A stretch of 64,000 bases of DNA, from sequence record KJ019095.1. The stretch is one strand, 5' to 3'. Positions 1,279-44,485 of this stretch are shown here, piece after piece. Position 1 is the first letter of the stretch. Each line of letters opens with the position of its first letter. A program made the translations under genes and the position numbers. The notes below the pieces were generated by a model that was not told where the DNA came from, did no database searches, and saw only the letters and a list, made by a program, of their open reading frames with translations.

Positions 1279-4200
1279 ATGATCGGTACTGAGCTAGGTA
1301 TTGACGTGAGAGTTAAGATTCAGGATGTGGTTTCCTCACAACTTCCTGATTATATTTTAAGTGAAGCTCCACTCACCGACGATTTTCTAAAACAGTTTTA
1401 CATATCTCAGGAATACCAAGGCGGTACTGTAGATTTTGCGTCAAACCTAGATCAATACCTCTCTCTGACAACACTTGGCAGTGAGAATCTTTATACTGCC
1501 TTTGAACTTACACAAGATGTAAGTATTGATGATACTATTATTCATGTTAATACTACAAGTACCTTCCCCAACGAATGGGGTCTTCTAAAGATTGATGATG
1601 AGATTGTCACCTATACCGGTCTCACCACAAACACCTTCACTGGAGTTGTAAGAGGTTTCAGTGGTATTTCTAGTTACAGAGATTCTGATAATCCTTCCGA
1701 ACTTGTATTTGAAACCACAACCGCTGCCACTCACACTACGGAAACTAATGTTGAGAATCTATCAACACTCTTCCTAAAGAATTTCTACGACAAACTCAAG
1801 TATACCTTTGCTCCTGGTTTTGAGAACCTAGAGTTCAATAGTGAAGTTAGTGTTGGTCAGTGGATTCGTCAGGCAAGATCATTCTACCAATCTAAGGGTA
1901 GTGAAGAGTCCTTCAAGATTCTATTCAGAGTATTATATGGTGAAGATCCTCTAGTTATTGATCTAGAGCAGTTCCTTATCAAACCTTCCCAAGCAGAGTA
2001 CTCTAGAAGGGACTATGCGGTTGCTATTCCAGTCAGTGGTAACCCTATAACCCTCAAGGGTAAGACAGTGTATCAGAGTGATGCAGAGGACGTGTTTGGT
2101 GCCATCTCAGAGATTGAGACATTTACTAGAGATAACAAATTATATTACAGAATCTACTTCTTTGTTAGTAATGATGAAATTGCTAATGAGAGAAAACTAT
2201 TCACTATCCCTGGTAGATCAAGAACACAGAGAGGATGGAATCAGGGTGACACTACAATCACTGTAGATACTACTCTTGGGTTTAGGGATAACAACGAGTT
2301 TATCACTGAAGATGGAACTAAGTTTACTTACTTGGAAAGGACTGTTAATCAGTTCCTAGGTGTTGAGTGTAGTGATACAGAGAAAACACTAGGTACTAAT
2401 GAAGATATCATTGATGATATTACTATCTTTGGTATTAATGATGCTGGTGAGACTGTCTCACTACGTATGACTGGCGTTATCTCTGATATTGAGTTCCCCG
2501 ATGAAGTCCCATTCACTACACCTGGAGAGAAGATATCTGTAGATACCTTAGGTGAGAATATCATCTCTGCTGATGTAACTAGAAGTGAGCCTACACAGAG
2601 ACAGATCATTGCTAATAGTTTCATCTATAACACTTCAGTAAGAATGGAAGTAGATGAACTCAATGGTTCTGATTTCCAAATCAATACTGCCTACTTAGAT
2701 AAAGCTTTCATTTCTCCTGGTGACTCTGTTGATATTCTCCAAAGAGGCTCGCAGCTTGTCTATGTCGCTAATCGCAAAGTAACCTCAGTTGACTATCTCA
2801 ATAGTATTATAACAATCAATGACTCATTTGGCATCCCTTTAGATCAATCACTTGATATCAGAAGGAATCAGAACTATGCAAAGAGTAGCACTACAGATAT
2901 TGAGTATGGTCAGAACTCTGTTCTATCCAATGTTCTGAACCTTTATGATGCAACAGAGTTTGATGGTAACTTCTATGTTGCAACTAACTCCCTACCTTCC
3001 TATGATATGGAAGTTAAAGTTGTTGAGAGTATTCTTACTGGAGTTACTACTTCTAACTTTGAAGGATATAACTCATTCACTGATCAGTACTCAACAATTA
3101 TCTTTGATTCTGCCACTTCATTCATAACTGGTGATCTAATTTCATATAGAGTTATCTCAGTAGAAAGAACAGGTATTCCCCTTATCACTGAAGGTGAATA
3201 CTTTGTAGAGGTTCTCAGCAACCCCAGAAAGATTAAACTATATGTATCACCTTCCTTTATTGGAAGTGATAACTTTGTTGGATTCGTGTATAACGATGCA
3301 GTAGGTGCTCATGCATTCACTCTAGAGGAACAGAAAGATAGAAGAATCAATACTAAGAATGTATTCAAGAAGATTCCCTTCACAGCAACCAAACAGAATA
3401 TCACTATCCCTAGAACACCCGATGTAACCCCCTCAGGTTCCCCTGTGGCAGTTCTTACTAATGGTGTAGAGGTATTGTCATATAAGTCACCAGATAAGGT
3501 GTTCTTGGGTCCTTTAGAAGAAGTTGTTCCTGTTGCTTCTGGTGAGGGTTATAGTGTTATTGGACCACCCAATATCCTAATCACACCACCTAATATTCAA
3601 GTTACAGATCCAACTGGTATTCCTACTGATGGTGGTGTTGCTAGAGTATCACCAGTTATCTCTGGTAGGTTGAAGAAGATCTATATCGATCCACAAGACT
3701 TTGATATTGAGGAAGTATTCTCAATCACTGTTGTTGGTGGTAACAGTCGTGGTGCCACAGCAAAACCACAGATTTCTAAGAGAACTCGTTCTATCCCCTT
3801 TGATACGAGACTTGATATCTACGGTGGTGGTATTAATCCAAATGAAGAGACCATCCTATTCTTAACTGAACACAAACTCGCCAAGGGTGATGCAATTATC
3901 TACGAAAACAACGATACACAAAGTATTGGTGTTAATGTTGCTGGTGGTAGTAACATCTATAATGGCCAGACACTATCTAACGGTGCTGTGTATTTTGCAG
4001 AACCCCTTAATAATGTAACCATTAAGATCTATGAGACTCTAGAAGATTTGAACTTGGGTATCAATACCGTTGGGTTCACTTCAAGTCAAACTGGGTTTGG
4101 TGTTCAGGACTTTACTACTATTCCTAGAAACCAACTCACTGGTGCTCTCATCACAGATGATGGTGGTGAGTTTGTATATCGTAAGATGGAGTTCCAACCA

Positions 4201-28585: not shown

Positions 28586-31396
28586 ATGGGTAATCTACAC
28601 AAATGGTTTTCAGGTTCCAAGTCCAAAGACGGCAAGTCTGGATGGGTGAATGTAAAGACTGGTGGTACCTGTGCAAGTGATGAACCCGGAGAGGGCACAC
28701 CCAAGTGTGTGTCTTCATCTAAAAGAGCTAGTATGACCAAATCCGAAAGGGAGTCTGCTTCTCGTAGAAAGAAAGCTGCTGACCCTGGACAACAACAAAA
28801 GTCAGGTGCTGCTAAACCAACTTACGTATCTACCGACAAGCCTAAGAAGATGAAAAAAGAACATTTTTCTAATTGGAGGGATGATACACCAGAACCAATG
28901 GTCAATGAACTCTTTGGATTGGGTAAGAAGAAGGAAAAGAAAAACAACGGTTCTGGTGGTTCTTTCTCAGCTTCTACGGCAGAGGCGAATGCTAGATCCA
29001 GGGGGTGGAAACCTGAAAACGAAAAACCAAAACCCATGGGTGCTTTTGGTCCAGAAAAGGGAACGAGTAAATCCCCAGACCAATTCAGAAATGTGAAGAA
29101 AGCTTTGGGTATTCGTCCAAAACCAGAACCCAAAGTTACAAGTCAAACAAAACCAGAACCCAAAGTTACAAGTCAAACAAAACCAGAACCCAAAGTTACA
29201 AGTCAAACAAAACCAGATCCTACACCCAAGTCCAATCCATATTCTGGAAAGGATAAGTTAAAACCCCAAAGTTTTAGTACTGCAGTTAAATCTGGTACTA
29301 AAATGAAAAAGAGTACTCCATCAGCCCCAGGTAAAATTGTGACTCAACAAGGTAATCAAAAAGAGCAGTTTTCTAACTGGAGAGATAACTACGTAGCCAC
29401 TGAGCACGAGTTCATCGATCTCATCAAACCAGAACCTATGGTAGGTATCTCCGAAACCAAGGAAGGTCAGATGAAATCTGGTAGGGAGCAGTATAAGAAA
29501 GAGAAGGAGGAAGGTCGTTATGGTGGAACTAAACCTTCTAATGAGAGAGTCGCAAAACTCATGAAGAAGCTGAAGGAGGAGACCAAGCAAGATGGTCCCG
29601 AACCTACAACGAAACAGACTCGTGGTGCTATGAAGAACATTCGTAGTAAAATGAATACTGCAAGTCACAAAGACCCAGATAAGAAGAAGACAAAGCAAGA
29701 ACTAGCTTTCCAAAAGGCTAGAGCTAAGGCTTGGGGTATGACTGAAGGAAAGGAAGAGAAGAGAAAGGATGCAATGCCCGAGGGTGATGTTGGATATGAG
29801 ATTCATAAGAAAGCAGTTGCCCAATACAACAAACAGAACCCTAGTAAGAAGGTGAAGGAGGAAGTAGAAATCTCCGAAGAAGATAAGAAGGGTTCAGGTA
29901 GTGGTAAGAAAGACGCCTGTTACAATAAGGTGAAGGCATCAGCTTCTGTATGGCCATCAGCTTATGCTTCTGGTCGTTTAGTTCAGTGCCGTAAGAAAGG
30001 TGCTGCCAACTATGGCAAATCCAAGAATGAGGAGTTTATCAGTATTGTAGCCTCCGAGTATTTCATCAATGAAGGACTCAATGATGAGGGAGTGGCAGAA
30101 CTAGTTGATTTGTTGGGACCTATTCAGTTTGGTGAATTGGTTAATGAGATTGCTGAGGGTGTAGAAGAAGATCTACTTACTGAAGCTAGAGCTGGTGGAG
30201 TTAAGATTGAACCCAAGAATAAGTCTGGTACTAGAGTTTCAGATCTATCCAAGGGAGCTAGAACTAGAGCTATTAACACACTCCGTAAAGAGAAGGCAGC
30301 TAAGAGAGCTGGTGAAGGTGAAGGTGGCAAGGGCAGTCTAAAGGACTCCCTAAAATCACAAGCAAAGGCAGCTAAGAAACCAGAACCCAAAAAGGCTAAG
30401 AAGGAAGAACCCAAAAAGGAAGCAGCTAAACCAGCAGTTGAGAAGGCTAAAGCCACTCAACCTAAGAAGAGAGGTTTCTTAGATTCTGTAGCCCGTCAAG
30501 TTAATAAGGGTATGGATCGTCATAGAAAGGCAATGGAACTAGCCCGTGAAACTGGTAAGGTAGCTAAGAAGGCAGCCAATATTGGTGGTCAAGTTGCTAA
30601 AGGTGCAGTTCAAGGTGTTAAGGACACCGCCAAGACAACCAAAAACGTAGCTGATAAACTAAAAGAAGAATACGTATTGGTTGTATCTGAAGAGTGGAAG
30701 CCTGACCCCACTGAGAAACGTGAAAAGAAAGCTGCTAAGCTAGGTAGGGATGAAGAGATCGAGAAAGGCAAGTCCAAGAAATATGGACGCGATGAATCCA
30801 AGATTGACAAACTCTACAAGCGTCGTATGGCTGTTCAGTTCAAAAAGAAAATGAGTGAGGAAAGACTAGACGAACTCAAGTGTTGGAAAGGTTACAAGCG
30901 TAAGAAGGGTTCTACACCTGGAGCTCCTGGTTCCTGTGTGAAAGAAGGTTTCTCCAGTTGGAGAGACGACCTTGACCTTATGGAAGGTGTTGCAGCTTGG
31001 CAACGTAAGTTTGTTTCTGAAGAATCCAAAAGAGAACTTCAGATTCGTGCTTCGAAGGGTGACAAGGCAGCCATGAAGAAACTTCATCAACTTCGTGCCG
31101 ATGGTAAGATTGGTAAAGAACCTGGTTTTGAACCTAAGAGAGATCTTCCTGAAGGTGCAGCATGGACACGTAAAGAGGGAAAGAATAAAGCCGGGGGGCT
31201 TAACGAGAAGGGACGTAAGTCTTACGAACGAGAGAACCCCGGCAGTGACCTCAAAGCACCACAACCTGAGGGTGGTAGTCGCAAGAAGTCGTTTTGCGCA
31301 CGTATGAGCGGAATGAAGAAGAAACTAACCTCTTCTAAGACTGCTAACGATCCCGATTCAAGAATCAATAAGTCACTAAGAAAATGGAACTGCTGA
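28586..31396 (+). CDS. Modular Lys-rich protein (936 aa) with DUF5872-like and DUF6321-like modules; putative internal head polyprotein
   Basis: Modules NLHKWF...GWV...PKCV, KDACYNKVK...WPSAYASGRLVQCRKKG, KCWKGY...CVKE and AAWTRKEGKN...SFCARM...SLRKWNC are separated by E-rich linkers. Confidence 0.75.
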   Translation: MGNLHKWFSGSKSKDGKSGWVNVKTGGTCASDEPGEGTPKCVSSSKRASMTKSERESASRRKKAADPGQQQKSGAAKPTYVSTDKPKKMKKEHFSNWRDDTPEPMVNELFGLGKKKEKKNNGSGGSFSASTAEANARSRGWKPENEKPKPMGAFGPEKGTSKSPDQFRNVKKALGIRPKPEPKVTSQTKPEPKVTSQTKPEPKVTSQTKPDPTPKSNPYSGKDKLKPQSFSTAVKSGTKMKKSTPSAPGKIVTQQGNQKEQFSNWRDNYVATEHEFIDLIKPEPMVGISETKEGQMKSGREQYKKEKEEGRYGGTKPSNERVAKLMKKLKEETKQDGPEPTTKQTRGAMKNIRSKMNTASHKDPDKKKTKQELAFQKARAKAWGMTEGKEEKRKDAMPEGDVGYEIHKKAVAQYNKQNPSKKVKEEVEISEEDKKGSGSGKKDACYNKVKASASVWPSAYASGRLVQCRKKGAANYGKSKNEEFISIVASEYFINEGLNDEGVAELVDLLGPIQFGELVNEIAEGVEEDLLTEARAGGVKIEPKNKSGTRVSDLSKGARTRAINTLRKEKAAKRAGEGEGGKGSLKDSLKSQAKAAKKPEPKKAKKEEPKKEAAKPAVEKAKATQPKKRGFLDSVARQVNKGMDRHRKAMELARETGKVAKKAANIGGQVAKGAVQGVKDTAKTTKNVADKLKEEYVLVVSEEWKPDPTEKREKKAAKLGRDEEIEKGKSKKYGRDESKIDKLYKRRMAVQFKKKMSEERLDELKCWKGYKRKKGSTPGAPGSCVKEGFSSWRDDLDLMEGVAAWQRKFVSEESKRELQIRASKGDKAAMKKLHQLRADGKIGKEPGFEPKRDLPEGAAWTRKEGKNKAGGLNEKGRKSYERENPGSDLKAPQPEGGSRKKSFCARMSGMKKKLTSSKTANDPDSRINKSLRKWNC
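29118..29217 (+). repeat. Perfect 30-bp tandem repeat, about 3.3 copies (KPEPKVTSQT)n
   Basis: AACCAGAACCCAAAGTTACAAGTCAAACAA starts at 29121, 29151 and 29181, with partial flanking copies. Confidence 0.95.
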
Positions 31397-31500
31397 GAAC
31401 CGCCCTGTCCCACACTTGGTTTGTGGGAATTTTGTCATACTTACTGGTAACAATTCCCGTTATTGGAATTGATATAATCCACAGACAAGAAAACAACTAA
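31384..31500 (+). CDS. Small single-TM protein (38 aa), not in the ORF track
   Basis: MELLRTALSHTWFVGILSYLLVTIPVIGIDIIHRQENN*. It overlaps the previous stop and ends 2 nt before the next ATG. Confidence 0.55.
   Translation: MELLRTALSHTWFVGILSYLLVTIPVIGIDIIHRQENN
31470..31478 (+). promoter_or_regulatory. Possible extended -10 sigma70 promoter (TG-A-TATAAT)
   Basis: Consensus extended -10 about 25 nt upstream of the 31503 ATG. It lies inside a small ORF, so it may be coincidental. Confidence 0.3.
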
Positions 31501-39191: not shown

Positions 39192-39419
39192 ATGGAAATC
39201 GACACATCGGTTGTGGATGCCATTGTGAGTGGTGAAACACCCGCAGGTATTACACAATCCATTAAGGATCTTCTGTATGCAAAAGCAAGCGAAAGGGTTG
39301 ATACCTATCGTGATGTAGTAGCAGACAGAATGTTTGGTGGTTCCGAAGTTCCCGAAGGGGAAACAGAAGAACCAGTAGCCGAACTTGAGAGTGATGAGGA
39401 AGAGGTAGAAGAAGAGTGA
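39192..39419 (+). CDS. Small acidic prohead-core-like protein (positional equivalent of T4 gp67/gp68)
   Basis: Lies between portal and protease, with IKDLLYAKASERVD and a Glu-rich tail. Confidence 0.6.
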   Translation: MEIDTSVVDAIVSGETPAGITQSIKDLLYAKASERVDTYRDVVADRMFGGSEVPEGETEEPVAELESDEEEVEEE

Positions 39420-39674: not shown

Positions 39675-40325
39675 ATGAAACTAATTACAGAAGAAATTAA
39701 CAAGGTTGAATTTATTGTCGAAGAAAACAATGGCAAACAGTCATGTTTTATTGAGGGAAACTTCCTTCAGGGCAATATTAAAAACCGAAATGGTCGTGTC
39801 TATAGAACCGAGACACTAGCTCGTGAAGTTGCTCGTTACAATGAACAGTATGTTCAGAACGGACGAGCTCTCGGTGAACTTGGGCATCCTGATGGACCCA
39901 CAGTTAACTTGGACCGAGTATCACATAACATTATTTCACTTCGTCAAGAGGGAAATAATTTCATAGGTAAGGCAAAACTTCTTGATACTCCTATGGGAAA
40001 TATCGCTAAGAGCCTTATTGGTGAAGGTGTTAAACTTGGAGTTTCTTCTCGTGGTGTTGGTTCCATTAGTGAAACGAAGCAAGGATATAAGCTTGTTGGT
40101 GAAGACTTTATGTTGGCAACCGCAGCTGATATTGTAGCTGATCCTAGTGCCCCAGACGCTTTTGTTCAGGGTATCATGGAAGGAAAAGAGTGGGTTTTTG
40201 TTAATGGACTCTTGAGAGAGAGTGACATTAAGAGCACACAGTCTACAATTGACAAACTAGTTGTCACAAAGGAACTTGAGGAGAAGAAGATTCAACTTTT
40301 TCAAGATTTTCTTTCAAATCTATAA
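39675..40325 (+). CDS. gp21: Prohead core protease gp21
   Basis: MKLITEEI, RALGELGHPDGPTVNLDRVSH, KLGVSSRGVGS and DIVADPSAPDAFV. Confidence 0.96.
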   Translation: MKLITEEINKVEFIVEENNGKQSCFIEGNFLQGNIKNRNGRVYRTETLAREVARYNEQYVQNGRALGELGHPDGPTVNLDRVSHNIISLRQEGNNFIGKAKLLDTPMGNIAKSLIGEGVKLGVSSRGVGSISETKQGYKLVGEDFMLATAADIVADPSAPDAFVQGIMEGKEWVFVNGLLRESDIKSTQSTIDKLVVTKELEEKKIQLFQDFLSNL

Positions 40326-41550: not shown

Positions 41551-42954
41551 ATGTACAATTCCGCAAACTCCGAATTTCTCCAGGAGAAGTGGGCACCAAT
41601 CCTCGAGCACGGTGAGTCCATCCAGGACGCACACAAGCGTGCCGTAACTGCCCAACTTCTAGAGAACCAGGAAGTAGCCCTTTCCGAAGAGCGTGCTTTC
41701 CTTTCAGAAGCCCCAACAGTTAACACCGACCCTAACGCAACTGGCAACGCTGGTTTCTCTGGTAATGGTGATCAATCAGTAGCTGGTTTCGATCCAGTAC
41801 TCATCAGCCTCATCCGTCGTTCAATGCCTAACTTGATGGCATACGACCTTTGTGGTGTTCAGCCAATGAACGGTCCTACCGGTCTTATCTTCGCGATGAG
41901 AAGCCGTTATGACTCACAGACAGGCGACGAGACCTTCTACAACGAAGTCAACTCTGCCTTCTCCGCACAGAACCAGTCCGGTACAGCTACTCAGGGTAAC
42001 TACTCTGGTCAGGTTGGCGCTGGTAACACAGTTGGTTTCGGTACAACCGCACAACGTGGTTCTAACCCTTCTATCCTCAACCCCGAGCCCGGTGACCAAG
42101 TTGGTTACAACGTAGGCCAGGGTATGTTGACCCAGGACGCTGAGAACCTTGGCGAAACTGGTACAGAGTTCAATGAGATGGGCTTCTCAATCGAGAAGGT
42201 CACCGTAACTGCTAAGTCACGGGCACTCAAGGCTCAGTACAGCATGGAATTGGCTCAGGATCTCAAAGCGATCCACGGTCTAAACGCCGAAGCTGAACTA
42301 TCTAACATCCTCGCCTCTGAAATTCTTTCAGAGATCAACAGAGAAGTTGTTAGAACTATCTACAAGTCAGCTGTATTCGGTGCTCAGAACAACGTAGCCA
42401 CTCCTGGTGTATTTGACCTAGACGTTGATTCCAACGGTAGATGGTCAGTTGAGAAGTTCAAAGGACTTATCTTCCAGATCGAAAGAGACGCTAACGCGAT
42501 CGCGCAACAAACTCGTAGAGGAAAGGGTAACTTCATCCTTTGTTCCGCGGATGTTGCTTCAGCTCTAACCATGGCTGGTGTACTTGACTACACCCCAGCA
42601 CTCAACGCTAACCTTAACGTTGATGACACCGGTAACACCTTCGCTGGTGTTCTACAAGGTAAGTATAGAGTCTACATTGACCCATACGCAGCTAACGTCA
42701 GCAACAACCAGTACTATGTCGCTGGTTACAAAGGTTCCTCACCTTATGACGCTGGTCTATTCTATTGTCCTTACGTTCCTCTCCAGATGGTTCGTTCAGT
42801 TGGACAGGACACCTTCCAGCCACGGATCGGATTTAAGACCCGCTACGGCATGGTCGCTAATCCTTTCGCTGAAGGTCTTGAGGCTGGATACGGACGTATC
42901 ACCCCTAACTCCAACGTCTACTACAGACGCGTTCAAGTCAAAAACCTTATGTGA
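41551..42954 (+). CDS. gp23: Major capsid protein gp23
   Basis: LQEKWAPIL, FDPVLISLIRRSMPNL, GVQPMNGPTGLIFAMR, KSRALKAQYSMELAQDLKAIHGL and FQPRIGFKTRYG. Confidence 0.98.
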   Translation: MYNSANSEFLQEKWAPILEHGESIQDAHKRAVTAQLLENQEVALSEERAFLSEAPTVNTDPNATGNAGFSGNGDQSVAGFDPVLISLIRRSMPNLMAYDLCGVQPMNGPTGLIFAMRSRYDSQTGDETFYNEVNSAFSAQNQSGTATQGNYSGQVGAGNTVGFGTTAQRGSNPSILNPEPGDQVGYNVGQGMLTQDAENLGETGTEFNEMGFSIEKVTVTAKSRALKAQYSMELAQDLKAIHGLNAEAELSNILASEILSEINREVVRTIYKSAVFGAQNNVATPGVFDLDVDSNGRWSVEKFKGLIFQIERDANAIAQQTRRGKGNFILCSADVASALTMAGVLDYTPALNANLNVDDTGNTFAGVLQGKYRVYIDPYAANVSNNQYYVAGYKGSSPYDAGLFYCPYVPLQMVRSVGQDTFQPRIGFKTRYGMVANPFAEGLEAGYGRITPNSNVYYRRVQVKNLM

Positions 42955-43154: not shown

Positions 43155-43562
43155 ATGAGTCTTAAAATGATTGCGCTAGCTAGTCTAGCTGCCCCCGCTG
43201 CACTACTAGCAGCACCTTCAGCACAAGCTGAAGTAATCTTTGCTGGCGAACCACAAGAACTAAGTGGTTTCTATGTAACCACCGAAGCCAACTCTGGTTG
43301 GACCGGTGATGACTACAGAGGATCCATCATTGATGTTCGCGCTGGTTACGAAGCCGCACTTACAGACACAATCGACGCATATGTCGAAGTAGGTCCTGCC
43401 TTCCTAATGCCTGATGGTAGTGACAACACAACCGAAGTCGGAGCTGAGGTAGGTGCATCTATTGCCGCCACCGATCACCTAGAATTCTACGGAGAATTCG
43501 AAGTCATCTCTGGTGATCTTAATGATTATGGCACCAAGTTTGGCGCAACATATCGCTTTTAG
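43155..43562 (+). CDS. Small outer-membrane beta-barrel (porin-like) protein with signal peptide (135 aa)
   Basis: Ala-rich signal peptide ending AQA, alternating beta-strands (GFYVTTEAN, VRAGYE, AYVEVGP, FYGEFEV) and a C-terminal BAM-type signal GATYRF. Confidence 0.75.
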   Translation: MSLKMIALASLAAPAALLAAPSAQAEVIFAGEPQELSGFYVTTEANSGWTGDDYRGSIIDVRAGYEAALTDTIDAYVEVGPAFLMPDGSDNTTEVGAEVGASIAATDHLEFYGEFEVISGDLNDYGTKFGATYRF

Positions 43563-43646: not shown

Positions 43647-43907
43647 ATGAACGGATCATTAGACCCAGACGAAAGAGTGTTGAGTGCTAACTCCAAACTA
43701 TCAGAAGTACCAGTATCCCTACAAAGGGCTATTGATATTCTTGGTTGGAATGATATAGACGACATTCGTGTAGAGATTGGTGGATGTGCTACTAGTGGTA
43801 TTCACCAGAAAGAAGACGCAAACCCAAAGTGGTCTCGTGAATTTGGTGATACTGTCTATAACAAGGACGCGTTTATTGTTATCAAAAATAGAAGCAGAAG
43901 TCAATGA
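43647..43907 (+). CDS. Conserved cyanophage hypothetical protein (86 aa)
   Basis: MNGSLDPDERVL...SGIHQKEDANPKW...YNKDAFIVIKNRSR, coupled to gp3 (ATGA). Confidence 0.65.
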   Translation: MNGSLDPDERVLSANSKLSEVPVSLQRAIDILGWNDIDDIRVEIGGCATSGIHQKEDANPKWSREFGDTVYNKDAFIVIKNRSRSQ

Positions 43908-44485
43908 CCAACATCTACTACAAACAACTAGATAATAGAAACTTTATGAGTCCTATTGGATTCCAGTTTTCTATTGCTAGATATCCTAAAGTTTCTTTCT
44001 TTAGTAATAAAGCAGGACTACCTGAGATTCGTTTGGGTGGGGCAGAACAAGCCAATTATCTAAAACAGATTATGCACCCTGGAGACAGGGTAGAGTATGG
44101 TGAACTCAATATTGAGTTCCTAGTTGACGAAGATATGTTGAACTATACTCTCATTCATAACTGGATTACTGGNTTGGGATTCCCAGAGACTCCCCAACAA
44201 TTCAAAGATATCACCACCAATCAAAAAGGTGAAGATGATATGAAGATCCAGTATAGTGATGGAACACTTGCTATTTTGAATAGTAACTATAATACTATTG
44301 CGAAAGTTAAGTTCTGGGATCTATATCCCACTTCACTATCAACTCTTGAGTTCTCTGCTACAGATGCTGATATCAATTACTTCATTGCAAGTACAACATT
44401 CAGTTTCTTGTACTATCAGATCTTGGGTAAGGATAATGAACCCCTAACTCCCGAATTTGTAAACCAATCATTGAATACTCGATGA
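43904..44485 (+). CDS. gp3: Tail completion / tube terminator protein, gp3-like
   Basis: NRNFMSPIGFQF, YGELNIEFLVDEDMLNYTLIHNWI and FWDLYPTSLSTLEF. Confidence 0.78.
   Translation: MTNIYYKQLDNRNFMSPIGFQFSIARYPKVSFFSNKAGLPEIRLGGAEQANYLKQIMHPGDRVEYGELNIEFLVDEDMLNYTLIHNWITXLGFPETPQQFKDITTNQKGEDDMKIQYSDGTLAILNSNYNTIAKVKFWDLYPTSLSTLEFSATDADINYFIASTTFSFLYYQILGKDNEPLTPEFVNQSLNTR

Follow-up and report, generated by a model that had tools for sequence, protein, structure and literature searches.

A chain of conserved basic mini-modules in a T4-like cyanophage as a putative precursor of internal head peptides

We analysed a stretch of 64,000 nucleotides (nt) from sequence record KJ019095.1, referred to below as the window. 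It matches Synechococcus phage ACG-2014f isolate Syn7803US34 with 100% identity, and this phage is a T4-like cyanomyovirus that belongs to the Kyanoviridae. One open reading frame (ORF) of this window, Syn7803US34_126, is annotated in the record as hypothetical only and encodes a protein of 936 amino acids (aa). Comparison with its relatives showed this protein to be a chain of autonomous, strongly conserved basic mini-modules (A-D) and Lys-rich segments, which are split by acidic or hydrophobic junctions of the type hydrophobic-x-Glu-small residue. With a probability of roughly 0.6 the product of the ORF is a precursor ("polyprotein") that would be packaged in the capsid and cut there by a gp21-type protease into internal head peptides. 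This model, which had been put forward in an initial annotation of the DNA, is partly supported owing to five comparative lines of evidence: the virion mass spectrometry (MS) of homologs, a T4-like leader on single-module orthologs, junction logos like those of the major capsid protein (MCP), the restriction of the junctions to phages with a T4-type head, and the occurrence of the modules as separate genes elsewhere. The support thus comes from homologs and from sequence rather than from this protein itself.

The ORF is uninterrupted and its product is indeed basic, as the initial annotation had described it, with an isoelectric point of 9.87 and contents of 17.7% Lys, 5.3% Arg and 9.5% Glu. 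Its eight cysteines make up four pairs, one per conserved module (A, C29/C41; B, C445/C468; C, C765/C784; D, C904/C936), in agreement with the earlier statement that several modules carry Cys pairs. The estimate of about 10 Lys/Arg-rich modules is fair in so far as cutting would release about nine basic fragments, but only four of these are conserved mini-domains, and the parts outside modules A-D are Lys-rich low-complexity or helical segments. The suspected likeness of module D to DUF6321 (PF19846) proved to be a true Pfam match above the gathering score (aa 865-934, E 9e-21, 74.8 bits versus a cut-off of 28.5, full profile 1-72; 81.6 bits for the isolated module D piece). The likeness to DUF5872 (PF19197), on the other hand, is a sub-threshold resemblance that does not suffice for membership (18.3 versus 27.5 bits), and it covers aa ~444-478 and positions 5-42 only of the 116 in the profile. 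PHROG 3477, a group without assigned function, matches the protein over 1-936 with E=0. Scans of the pieces and of the neighbouring genes against Pfam, NCBIfam and PHROG gave nothing informative beyond DUF6321, and no enzymatic or peptidase domain was detected by Pfam in the 936-aa protein.

A whole-protein AlphaFold model built on an alignment of 91 sequences (mean predicted local distance difference test score, pLDDT, 57) predicts aa 1-320, including module A, to be disordered, the linker 480-536 to be helical and aa 629-702 to form a long helix, while module B appears as two helices, module C as a β-hairpin and module D as a small helical domain. For module D modelled alone (pLDDT 70) no structural match was found in the PDB, and BFVD yielded only other DUF6321 proteins.

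Protein-level searches detected parts of the 936-aa protein in 513 phage records. Alignments of 7 and then 90 family members with the window protein revealed four short, very strongly conserved modules, each with exactly one conserved Cys pair, and linkers that are hypervariable in length and sequence. Modules A-D are common to PSSM4_160 and SSSM7_236, both annotated as T4-GC 119, which places the window protein in T4-GC119, a cluster of Sullivan et al. 2010 whose gene measures 276-2985 nt among 16 cyanomyoviruses. T4-GC119 goes under the labels "DUF6321 domain-containing protein" and, for cyanomyoviruses, "structural protein", but the entries for T4-GC119 and DUF6321 carry no functional or architectural interpretation, and literature searches on DUF6321 and on capsid-targeting sequences in cyanophages found nothing specific. 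Module D has 52 invariant columns among eight distant phages, and its identity of 65-90% between myo-, podo-, crAss-like and pelagiphages suggests that it has a specific, universal partner and does not simply neutralise charge. Many family members begin with a DUF3008-like element (..KKQQRFFGM..AKTKHKGLPE..; S-SSM7, locus L006, 4131-7115; S-RIM2, locus L008, 3677-4726), and P-SSM4 and S-SSM7 possess further modules past D (CKPIPKG..-type, Gly/Asn-rich tail), so that the family draws on more modules than the four present in the window protein.

As a single sequence cannot support a claim about cleavage sites, the junctions were compared with those of relatives. All eleven motifs listed as cleavage sites in the initial annotation are present in the protein (aa 105-108, 287-290, 384-387, 428-431, 493-496, 530-533, 699-702, 760-763, 797-800, 809-812 and 853-856), and comparative support was obtained for EISE431-E before module B, RLDE763-L before C, DLPE856-G before D, DLME800-GVAAW and GMTE387-G. 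The element DLME800-GVAAWQRK looks like a junction followed by the first residues of a degenerate D module, and MVNE108 and GISE290 each come after a repeated FSNWRD..PEPMV element. In the AlphaFold model E496, E702 and E763 are located at predicted helix ends, E856 in a disordered stretch and E800 within a predicted helix. In-silico cutting at all candidate sites yields nine fragments of basic character (net charge +3 to +26), among them the four Cys-pair modules, and furthermore several small acidic peptides clustered in aa 497-533; a comparable acidic stretch follows module B in PSSM4_156.

For module D, 80 viral contigs encoding the module were classed by tblastn with gp13-gp23 of the window phage. 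Glu directly precedes D in 35 of the 36 contigs with T4-type markers (..VSE-GAAW, ..IEE-VAAW, ..ELSE-GAAW, ..FMVE-VAAW), whereas in 37 of the 43 marker-negative contigs the gene starts at the module itself (MAKS-PAWQRK..), with a Fisher p of 6e-15 that, like the other p-values of these scans, is nominal because the sequences are related. The 6 marker-negative exceptions are mostly short contigs or contigs with a match to gp17 only. Among 41 distinct D junctions P3 is hydrophobic in 25 and P3 or P4 in 38 (93%), compared with 20% and 33%, respectively, for the other glutamates of the same proteins; P1' is G, A, V or S. For module B, a hydrophobic-x-E lies at most 18 residues before DACY in 47 of 49 marker-positive contigs (96%) versus 24% of random windows, with I (17), L (9), V (6), M (4) or F (1) at P3, hence I/L in 26/37, and mostly A, G or V at P1'.

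Judged from these residues, the logos of the D and B junctions equal the MCP maturation sites of the same phage group. The MCP site AFLSE/AP given in the initial annotation was confirmed, since FLSE53-A54 of the window MCP aligns with FLTE-A of T4 gp23, the mature chain of which comprises 456 of 521 residues in solved structures. Other marine T4-like contigs carry FLTE-A, MLNE-Q, SLME-A, MLNE-V and MINE-A at this position, and the motif recognised by gp21 in T4 is L/I-X-E (PMC9026906). The gp21 of the window (39675-39700) itself begins with MKLITEE.., resembling the N-terminal L-I-E site noted for T4 gp21 (PMC9026906).

T4 internal proteins carry N-terminal capsid targeting sequences of 10-19 residues, in which targeting is influenced by residues 4 and 7 and processing by residues 8 and 10; Asp at position 10 permits targeting without cleavage, the two functions being separable (PMC9026906). 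In marine metagenomes module D occurs as a stand-alone protein of 80-150 aa with 7981 matches, and 11 of the best 120, all of them with >80% identity, start with MKTYK(D/E)FITE-VA.., MKCYKEFISE-VA.. or MTFDEFITE-A... According to NC_000866 the N-termini of T4 IPIII and IPII both read MKTYQEFIAE-A... The marine leaders are identical to this leader at 7-8 of 10 positions, including all mapped positions 4, 7, 8 and 10. In three contigs the leader-bearing D genes, which encode 90 aa, are located in the gp16-gp17 slot of phages that also encode Portal_T4, Peptidase_S77, the T4 scaffold and Gp23. In its smallest form, the content of the slot in which the window gene resides is therefore "leader + module D".

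Members of the family have been detected in virions. T4-GC119 was found with 13 peptides in purified virions of S-SM1, and it is not present in S-PM2 (PMC3037559 Table S8). ORF160 of S-CREM2, which has the modules A-C-B, was identified by 7 unique peptides (PMC10665884 Table 3), and ORF29 of S-SCSM1, located between terS and terL and containing all four modules A-D, carries the flag "virion protein" in its record, where this flag marks detection by MS. Family members are therefore virion-associated in three independent preparations purified in caesium chloride (CsCl) gradients, the detections referring to homologs and not to ACG-2014f.

The comparison of module order and content across cyanomyoviruses, which had been proposed in the initial annotation, revealed a variable order: A-C-B in S-CREM2, K-A-B-C-x-D in S-SCSM1, K-A-B-C in S-SKS1 and A-..-B-..-C-..-D in the window. 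Despite these changes the hydrophobic-x-E is retained before each module, and junction and module thus appear to move as one cassette. In non-T4 phages each module forms a mini-gene of its own, which begins at the module and lacks an acidic leader. A stand-alone module D is found beside capsid or scaffold genes in the T7-like cyanopodoviruses P-SCSP1m and KBS-P-1A and in the pelagiphage HTVC103P, and also in a crAss-like marine phage. Roseophage CRP-901 (OQ401623.1, locus L104) has an unannotated gap of 520 nt at 2483-3003 with three tandem mini-ORFs, namely a stand-alone B (54 aa), a stand-alone A and a PKGYHWM-type module; they directly precede an 85-aa gene of the "HVA1 family", the C-terminus of which (..RRSNFRARHNC..RYWSCKAW) is loosely D-like.

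In sibling isolates of ACG-2014f, several of them plaque-isolated and including C9 (locus L013) and C29 (locus L014), changes of +40 and +35 nt in the perfect 30-bp repeat 29118-29217 frameshift the gene into two ORFs; at least 7 of the 30 records listed show such a split annotation. The repeat variation may be genuine, acting as a contingency-like switch that turns the gene on or off or splits it, or else the repeat has been misassembled repeatedly; provided that the length changes are not assembly errors, the split gene of the siblings implies that the parts need not be covalently joined. Isolate C29 (KJ019155.1) has a different C-terminal half of module D (window aa 908-935, nt 31307-31390): 20 of 80 positions are changed, and the sequence is similar to the cyanopodovirus version of the KBS-P-1A type. 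This pattern, the remainder of the gene being ~99% identical, looks like module-level recombination between myovirus and podovirus gene pools. With autonomous units, conserved protease-type sites between them and separate genes in relatives, the protein has, as far as can be read from sequence, the hallmarks of a viral polyprotein.

Several observations weigh against a packaged and processed precursor. Within the window protein [ILVM]-x-E occurs 22 times, compared with 11.7 in global and ~13.5 in local shuffles (P ~0.005), but an out-of-register control (hydrophobic at i, E at i+3) reaches 21, and the motif count within one sequence was therefore dropped as evidence. Of the sites listed initially, FINE496, LLTE533, VVSE702 and FVSE812 are lineage-specific and without comparative support, in contrast to EISE, RLDE, DLPE, DLME and GMTE; MPE399, a candidate added to the earlier list, is Asp in sibling isolate C29 and not conserved. 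The N-terminus of the window protein (M-GNLHKWF) has no targeting leader, T4-like N-terminal leaders were not found in a scan of all window ORFs, and the protein contains only internal partial leader matches such as YFINE496 and FGELVNE521, the latter being the sole match to the full pattern. The contrast between T4 and non-T4 contigs is confounded by phylogeny, because both groups are also sequence clades of the module, and for module B it is weak (p 0.02), because many marker-less contigs carry junctions as well; at least one of them (L175), with a leader-bearing module B, encodes a T4-superfamily DNA polymerase, the protease not being confirmed on this fragment. In the Syn9-type subfamily the junction before D reads EEV(T/Q)NE-G, with a polar P3 and a hydrophobic P4, and thus departs from the strict L/I-x-E rule of T4. 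T4-GC119 is furthermore encoded by Syn9 yet undetected in its virions (PMC3037559 Table S8), the syntenic homolog being gp114, which is tempered by the presumably poor tryptic peptides obtained from Lys/Arg-rich fragments. Finally, the authors of the S-CREM2 study caution that basic proteins can co-purify with virions (PMC10665884), and published virion proteomes report peptide counts only, which do not distinguish intact from cut protein.

For this reason the MS data on homologs would fit equally well a packaged and essentially uncleaved, beads-on-a-string internal or core-associated virion protein, the junctions of which would serve as multivalent scaffold-binding elements or charge-balancing spacers and would be trimmed at few sites at most. 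The separability of targeting (4, 7) and processing (8, 10) in the T4 leader, where Asp10 gives targeting without cleavage (PMC9026906), agrees with such a protein, as do the polar P3 before D in the Syn9 type and the model, in which helix 629-702 and helices 792-838 are predicted to be scaffold-like and E800 to lie inside a helix. However, binding alone requires neither the invariant Glu at P1 nor the small P1' residue which the junctions share with MCP maturation sites. Taking furthermore into account that single-module orthologs retain Ile/Glu at the processing positions of the T4 leader and that other phages and split-gene isolates use these modules in the form of separate small proteins, an uncleaved protein seems unlikely.

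It appears rather improbable that the protein acts outside the capsid, as a late-expressed, very basic nucleic-acid-binding or host-takeover protein that co-purifies with virions and whose junctions are lineage-specific N-terminal flanks. Such a role would be in line with the failure to detect the homolog in Syn9 virions, with the metabolic cargo genes housed in the same slots, with the replication genes adjoining the P-SSM4 and S-CREM2 homologs, and with the conservation of module D across phages with unrelated capsids; it leaves the near-identity of the marine leaders to the T4 capsid-targeting leader hard to account for, and it disagrees with the presence of family members in three independent CsCl-purified virion proteomes and with a junction logo equal to that of the MCP site. 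Hydrophobic-x-Glu triplets arising by chance, without function, from the composition of a disordered Lys/Glu-rich protein would explain the modest enrichment within the single sequence and the nearly equal i+3 control. This last explanation is already contradicted by the comparative data and can be regarded as extremely improbable: the junction Glu is position-specifically conserved in 91 relatives, the enrichments amount to 93% versus 33% (D) and 96% versus 24% (B), and the pattern is tied to T4-type contexts.

According to the favoured model of a capsid-packaged, processed precursor, the protein would be co-assembled late in infection into the prohead core through junction elements resembling the T4 capsid-targeting leader. 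A gp21-type serine protease would then cut after the junction glutamates, as at FLSE-A in the MCP. The acidic linker pieces would exit the head like T4 scaffold fragments, and the basic modules (net +3 to +26) would remain with the packaged DNA and probably enter the host together with it. A wider reading, which we consider possible yet doubtful, is that marine phages share a toolkit of tiny conserved basic modules serving as virion cargo for the host, which T4-like cyanophages concatenated into processed polyproteins via junctions derived from the T4 leader. This tentative toolkit would comprise DUF6321, the WPSAYASG module, the CWxGY hairpin, the LRDWF module, DUF3008 and others. If it exists, it would represent a recombining "cargo cassette", in which one gene loads a set of ejected peptides acting on universal host targets.

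The internal proteins of T4 and their leader are a classic system, and the leader also serves to package foreign proteins; to our knowledge, they have been regarded as a speciality of T-even phages with one leader per gene. The proposed likeness to IPI, IPII and IPIII (and Alt) lies in a putative small basic head cargo, in the 10-residue I-x-E leader, 7-8/10 identical in single-module marine orthologs, in a presumed dependence on Peptidase_S77 with its conserved MCP site, and in genes that are non-essential, hypervariable and exchangeable. In contrast to the T4 proteins, the window protein concatenates many modules with internal junctions, has no N-terminal leader and shares its modules with non-T4 phages, and the mature parts show no sequence similarity (no match to an internal-protein family of PHROG, Pfam or NCBIfam). 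The core proteins gp22, gp67 and gp68 of T4 and the inner-body or ejection proteins of phiKZ, 201phi2-1 and SPN3US are precursors cut at multiple Glu sites by gp21 homologs (PMC9026906). Cutting at many Glu sites in the prohead, with some fragments retained and others expelled, is what the proposed model has in common with them; their fragments are not independent conserved domains, whereas those of the window protein are autonomous modules that occur as stand-alone genes elsewhere. The window protein would thus be comparable in its working, but not homologous, to the internal proteins of T4 and to those core proteins of T4 and giant phages that undergo multiple cleavage.

Polyvalent proteins (Iyer et al. 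2017, PMC5512222) combine several domains and are believed to travel inside the capsid, to be delivered along with the DNA and to be separated into individual effectors. They bear enzymatic effector domains and, in most cases, a peptidase (MPTase) of their own. The window protein has neither according to Pfam, would be processed in trans by the head protease, and consists of non-enzymatic basic units of 25-85 aa, and thus does not belong to this group; Iyer et al. 2017 mention neither cyanophages nor the modules of the window protein. What is new is the concatenated format with modules common to non-T4 phages.

The gene and three further unassigned ORFs occupy the interval from gp16 (small terminase) to gp17 (large terminase), in a head and packaging region with the order gp13-gp14-gp15-gp16 ... 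gp17-gp18-gp19-gp20-gp21-gp22-gp23. The flanking ORFs of 203 aa and 403 aa showed no homology to Syn9 gp113 or to the "virion structural protein" of S-RIM2. The location in the head/packaging cluster stated in the initial annotation is correct for this window and common to Syn9, S-P4, S-T4, S-RIM2, S-SCSM1 and S-SKS1, but it is not a conserved trait, since the homolog is found outside the cluster in P-SSM4, S-SSM7, S-CREM2 and Sf-FS3. Metabolic cargo (petE, PTOX, zwf, gnd, hli, psbA) is also housed in the g16-g17 slot of myoviruses and in the scaffold-MCP region of podoviruses, and gene position alone therefore proves little. Where the family gene is located outside g16-g17 (P-SSM4, locus L003, 3370-7878; S-CREM2, L102; Sf-FS3, L005), it is accompanied by a cytidylyltransferase/NMNAT-like gene and small ORFs that are also seen in virion proteomes (T4-GC190, 420-426; S-CREM2 ORF154-156, 160), and these genes may form a conserved "virion cargo" cluster beside replication genes.

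The late-promoter variant that had been assigned to the gene could not be confirmed: neither the canonical cyanophage late promoter NATAAATA (PMC2984593) nor TATAAATA was found upstream of ORF 28586, where the closest resemblance is GCTAAATA, ~95 nt 5' of the ATG. The window contains 9 copies of ATAAATA (1168, 13963, 15449, 34410, 39166, 40331, 43088, 46229 and 54075), none of them near this ORF. All nine are on the + strand and the motif is rarer than in shuffles (9 versus 16); 4 of the 9 are the full T4 late-promoter octamer immediately 5' of gp18, gp22 and other late ORFs and are probably genuine late promoters. The coordinates of the features are compiled in Table 1.

Table 1. Features of the precursor ORF and of the putative processing machinery in the window.
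Feature	Position	Strand	Remarks
936-aa precursor ORF (putative)	28586..31396	+	locus tag Syn7803US34_126, KJ019095.1; T4-GC119/DUF6321-containing family; PHROG 3477 full length
Module A	28589..28840	+	aa 2-85; ..LHKWF..GWVNV..C29..C41..RRKKAADP..PTYV; begins right after Met1; conserved in 91 family members
First FSNWRD motif and PEPMVNE108 candidate site	28859..28909	+	FSNWR..E-G junction type recurs before D in relatives
Tandem repeat, 30 bp x3.3	29118..29217	+	PEPKVTSQTK x3
Second FSNWRD motif, EHEFIDLIKPEPMVGISE290 candidate site	29363..29455	+	resembles S-SKS1 EYSDWRDDF..EYEFVDIIKAEP..IDE-LKCW
GMTE387 candidate site (next residue G)	29735..29746	+	AMTE-G/AKDKKGKGSG is the pre-B junction in S-SCSM1 and contig L180
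Pre-B junction EVEISE431-EDKKGSGSGKK	29861..29878	+	same type as GETIEE-EDKKGSGSGTK; 47/49 T4-context loci with hydrophobic-x-E
Module B	29891..30025	+	aa 436-480; GKKDACY..WPSAYASG..C..KKGA; sub-threshold DUF5872; two confident helices
Acidic helical linker	30026..30184	+	aa 481-533, net ~-11; hydrophobic-x-E at E496, E505, E521, E524, E533
Lys/Ala-rich basic segment	30185..30691	+	aa 534-702, net +26; long predicted helix 629-702 ending at VVSE702
Basic segment	30692..30874	+	aa 703-763; ends in pre-C junction RLDE763-LKCW; helix 737-762 ends at the site
Module C	30875..30943	+	aa 764-786; KCWKGY..C (CWxGY...C); predicted beta-hairpin enclosed by Cys pair
Third FSSWRDD motif, DLME800-GVAAWQRK, then FVSE812	30944..31021	+	relatives: FSNWREELSE-GAAWTKK
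Pre-D junction KRDLPE856-GAAW	31139..31153	+	Glu856 invariant in 91 relatives
Module D	31154..31393	+	aa 857-936; DUF6321, PF19846; small four-helix domain; Cys904/Cys936
Terminator-like hairpin and T-run	31408..31428	+	12 nt past the stop codon
gp21 prohead protease (Peptidase_S77), proposed processing enzyme	39675..40325	+	E 7e-33
MCP maturation site F-L-S-E53-A54	41698..41712	+	yardstick for protease specificity in this phage

Three further ORFs of the window were noted. A very acidic ORF of 75 aa (39192-39419) between gp20 and gp21 is positioned like gp67/68 and may encode a small core protein. A 135-aa ORF immediately behind the MCP gene (43155-43562) has a signal-peptide-like start (MSLKMIALASLAAPAALLAAPSAQA..) and a beta-rich composition like that of outer-membrane proteins, which is unusual within a head gene cluster. 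The translation of a 193-aa ORF at 43904-44485 contains an X and thus points to an ambiguous base near nt 44170.

If the proposed precursor model is correct, the targeting and processing logic of T4 would act in oceanic cyanophages and would have been extended there to a polyprotein format, with a cargo that includes modules among the most abundant unannotated small proteins of marine viromes. It would account for the extreme variation in gene size among cyanomyoviruses (276-2985 nt) and would provide a first functional handle on T4-GC119/DUF6321 and its partner modules. The basic modules would then be candidates for ejected peptides with a possible action right at the onset of infection of globally important phototrophs.

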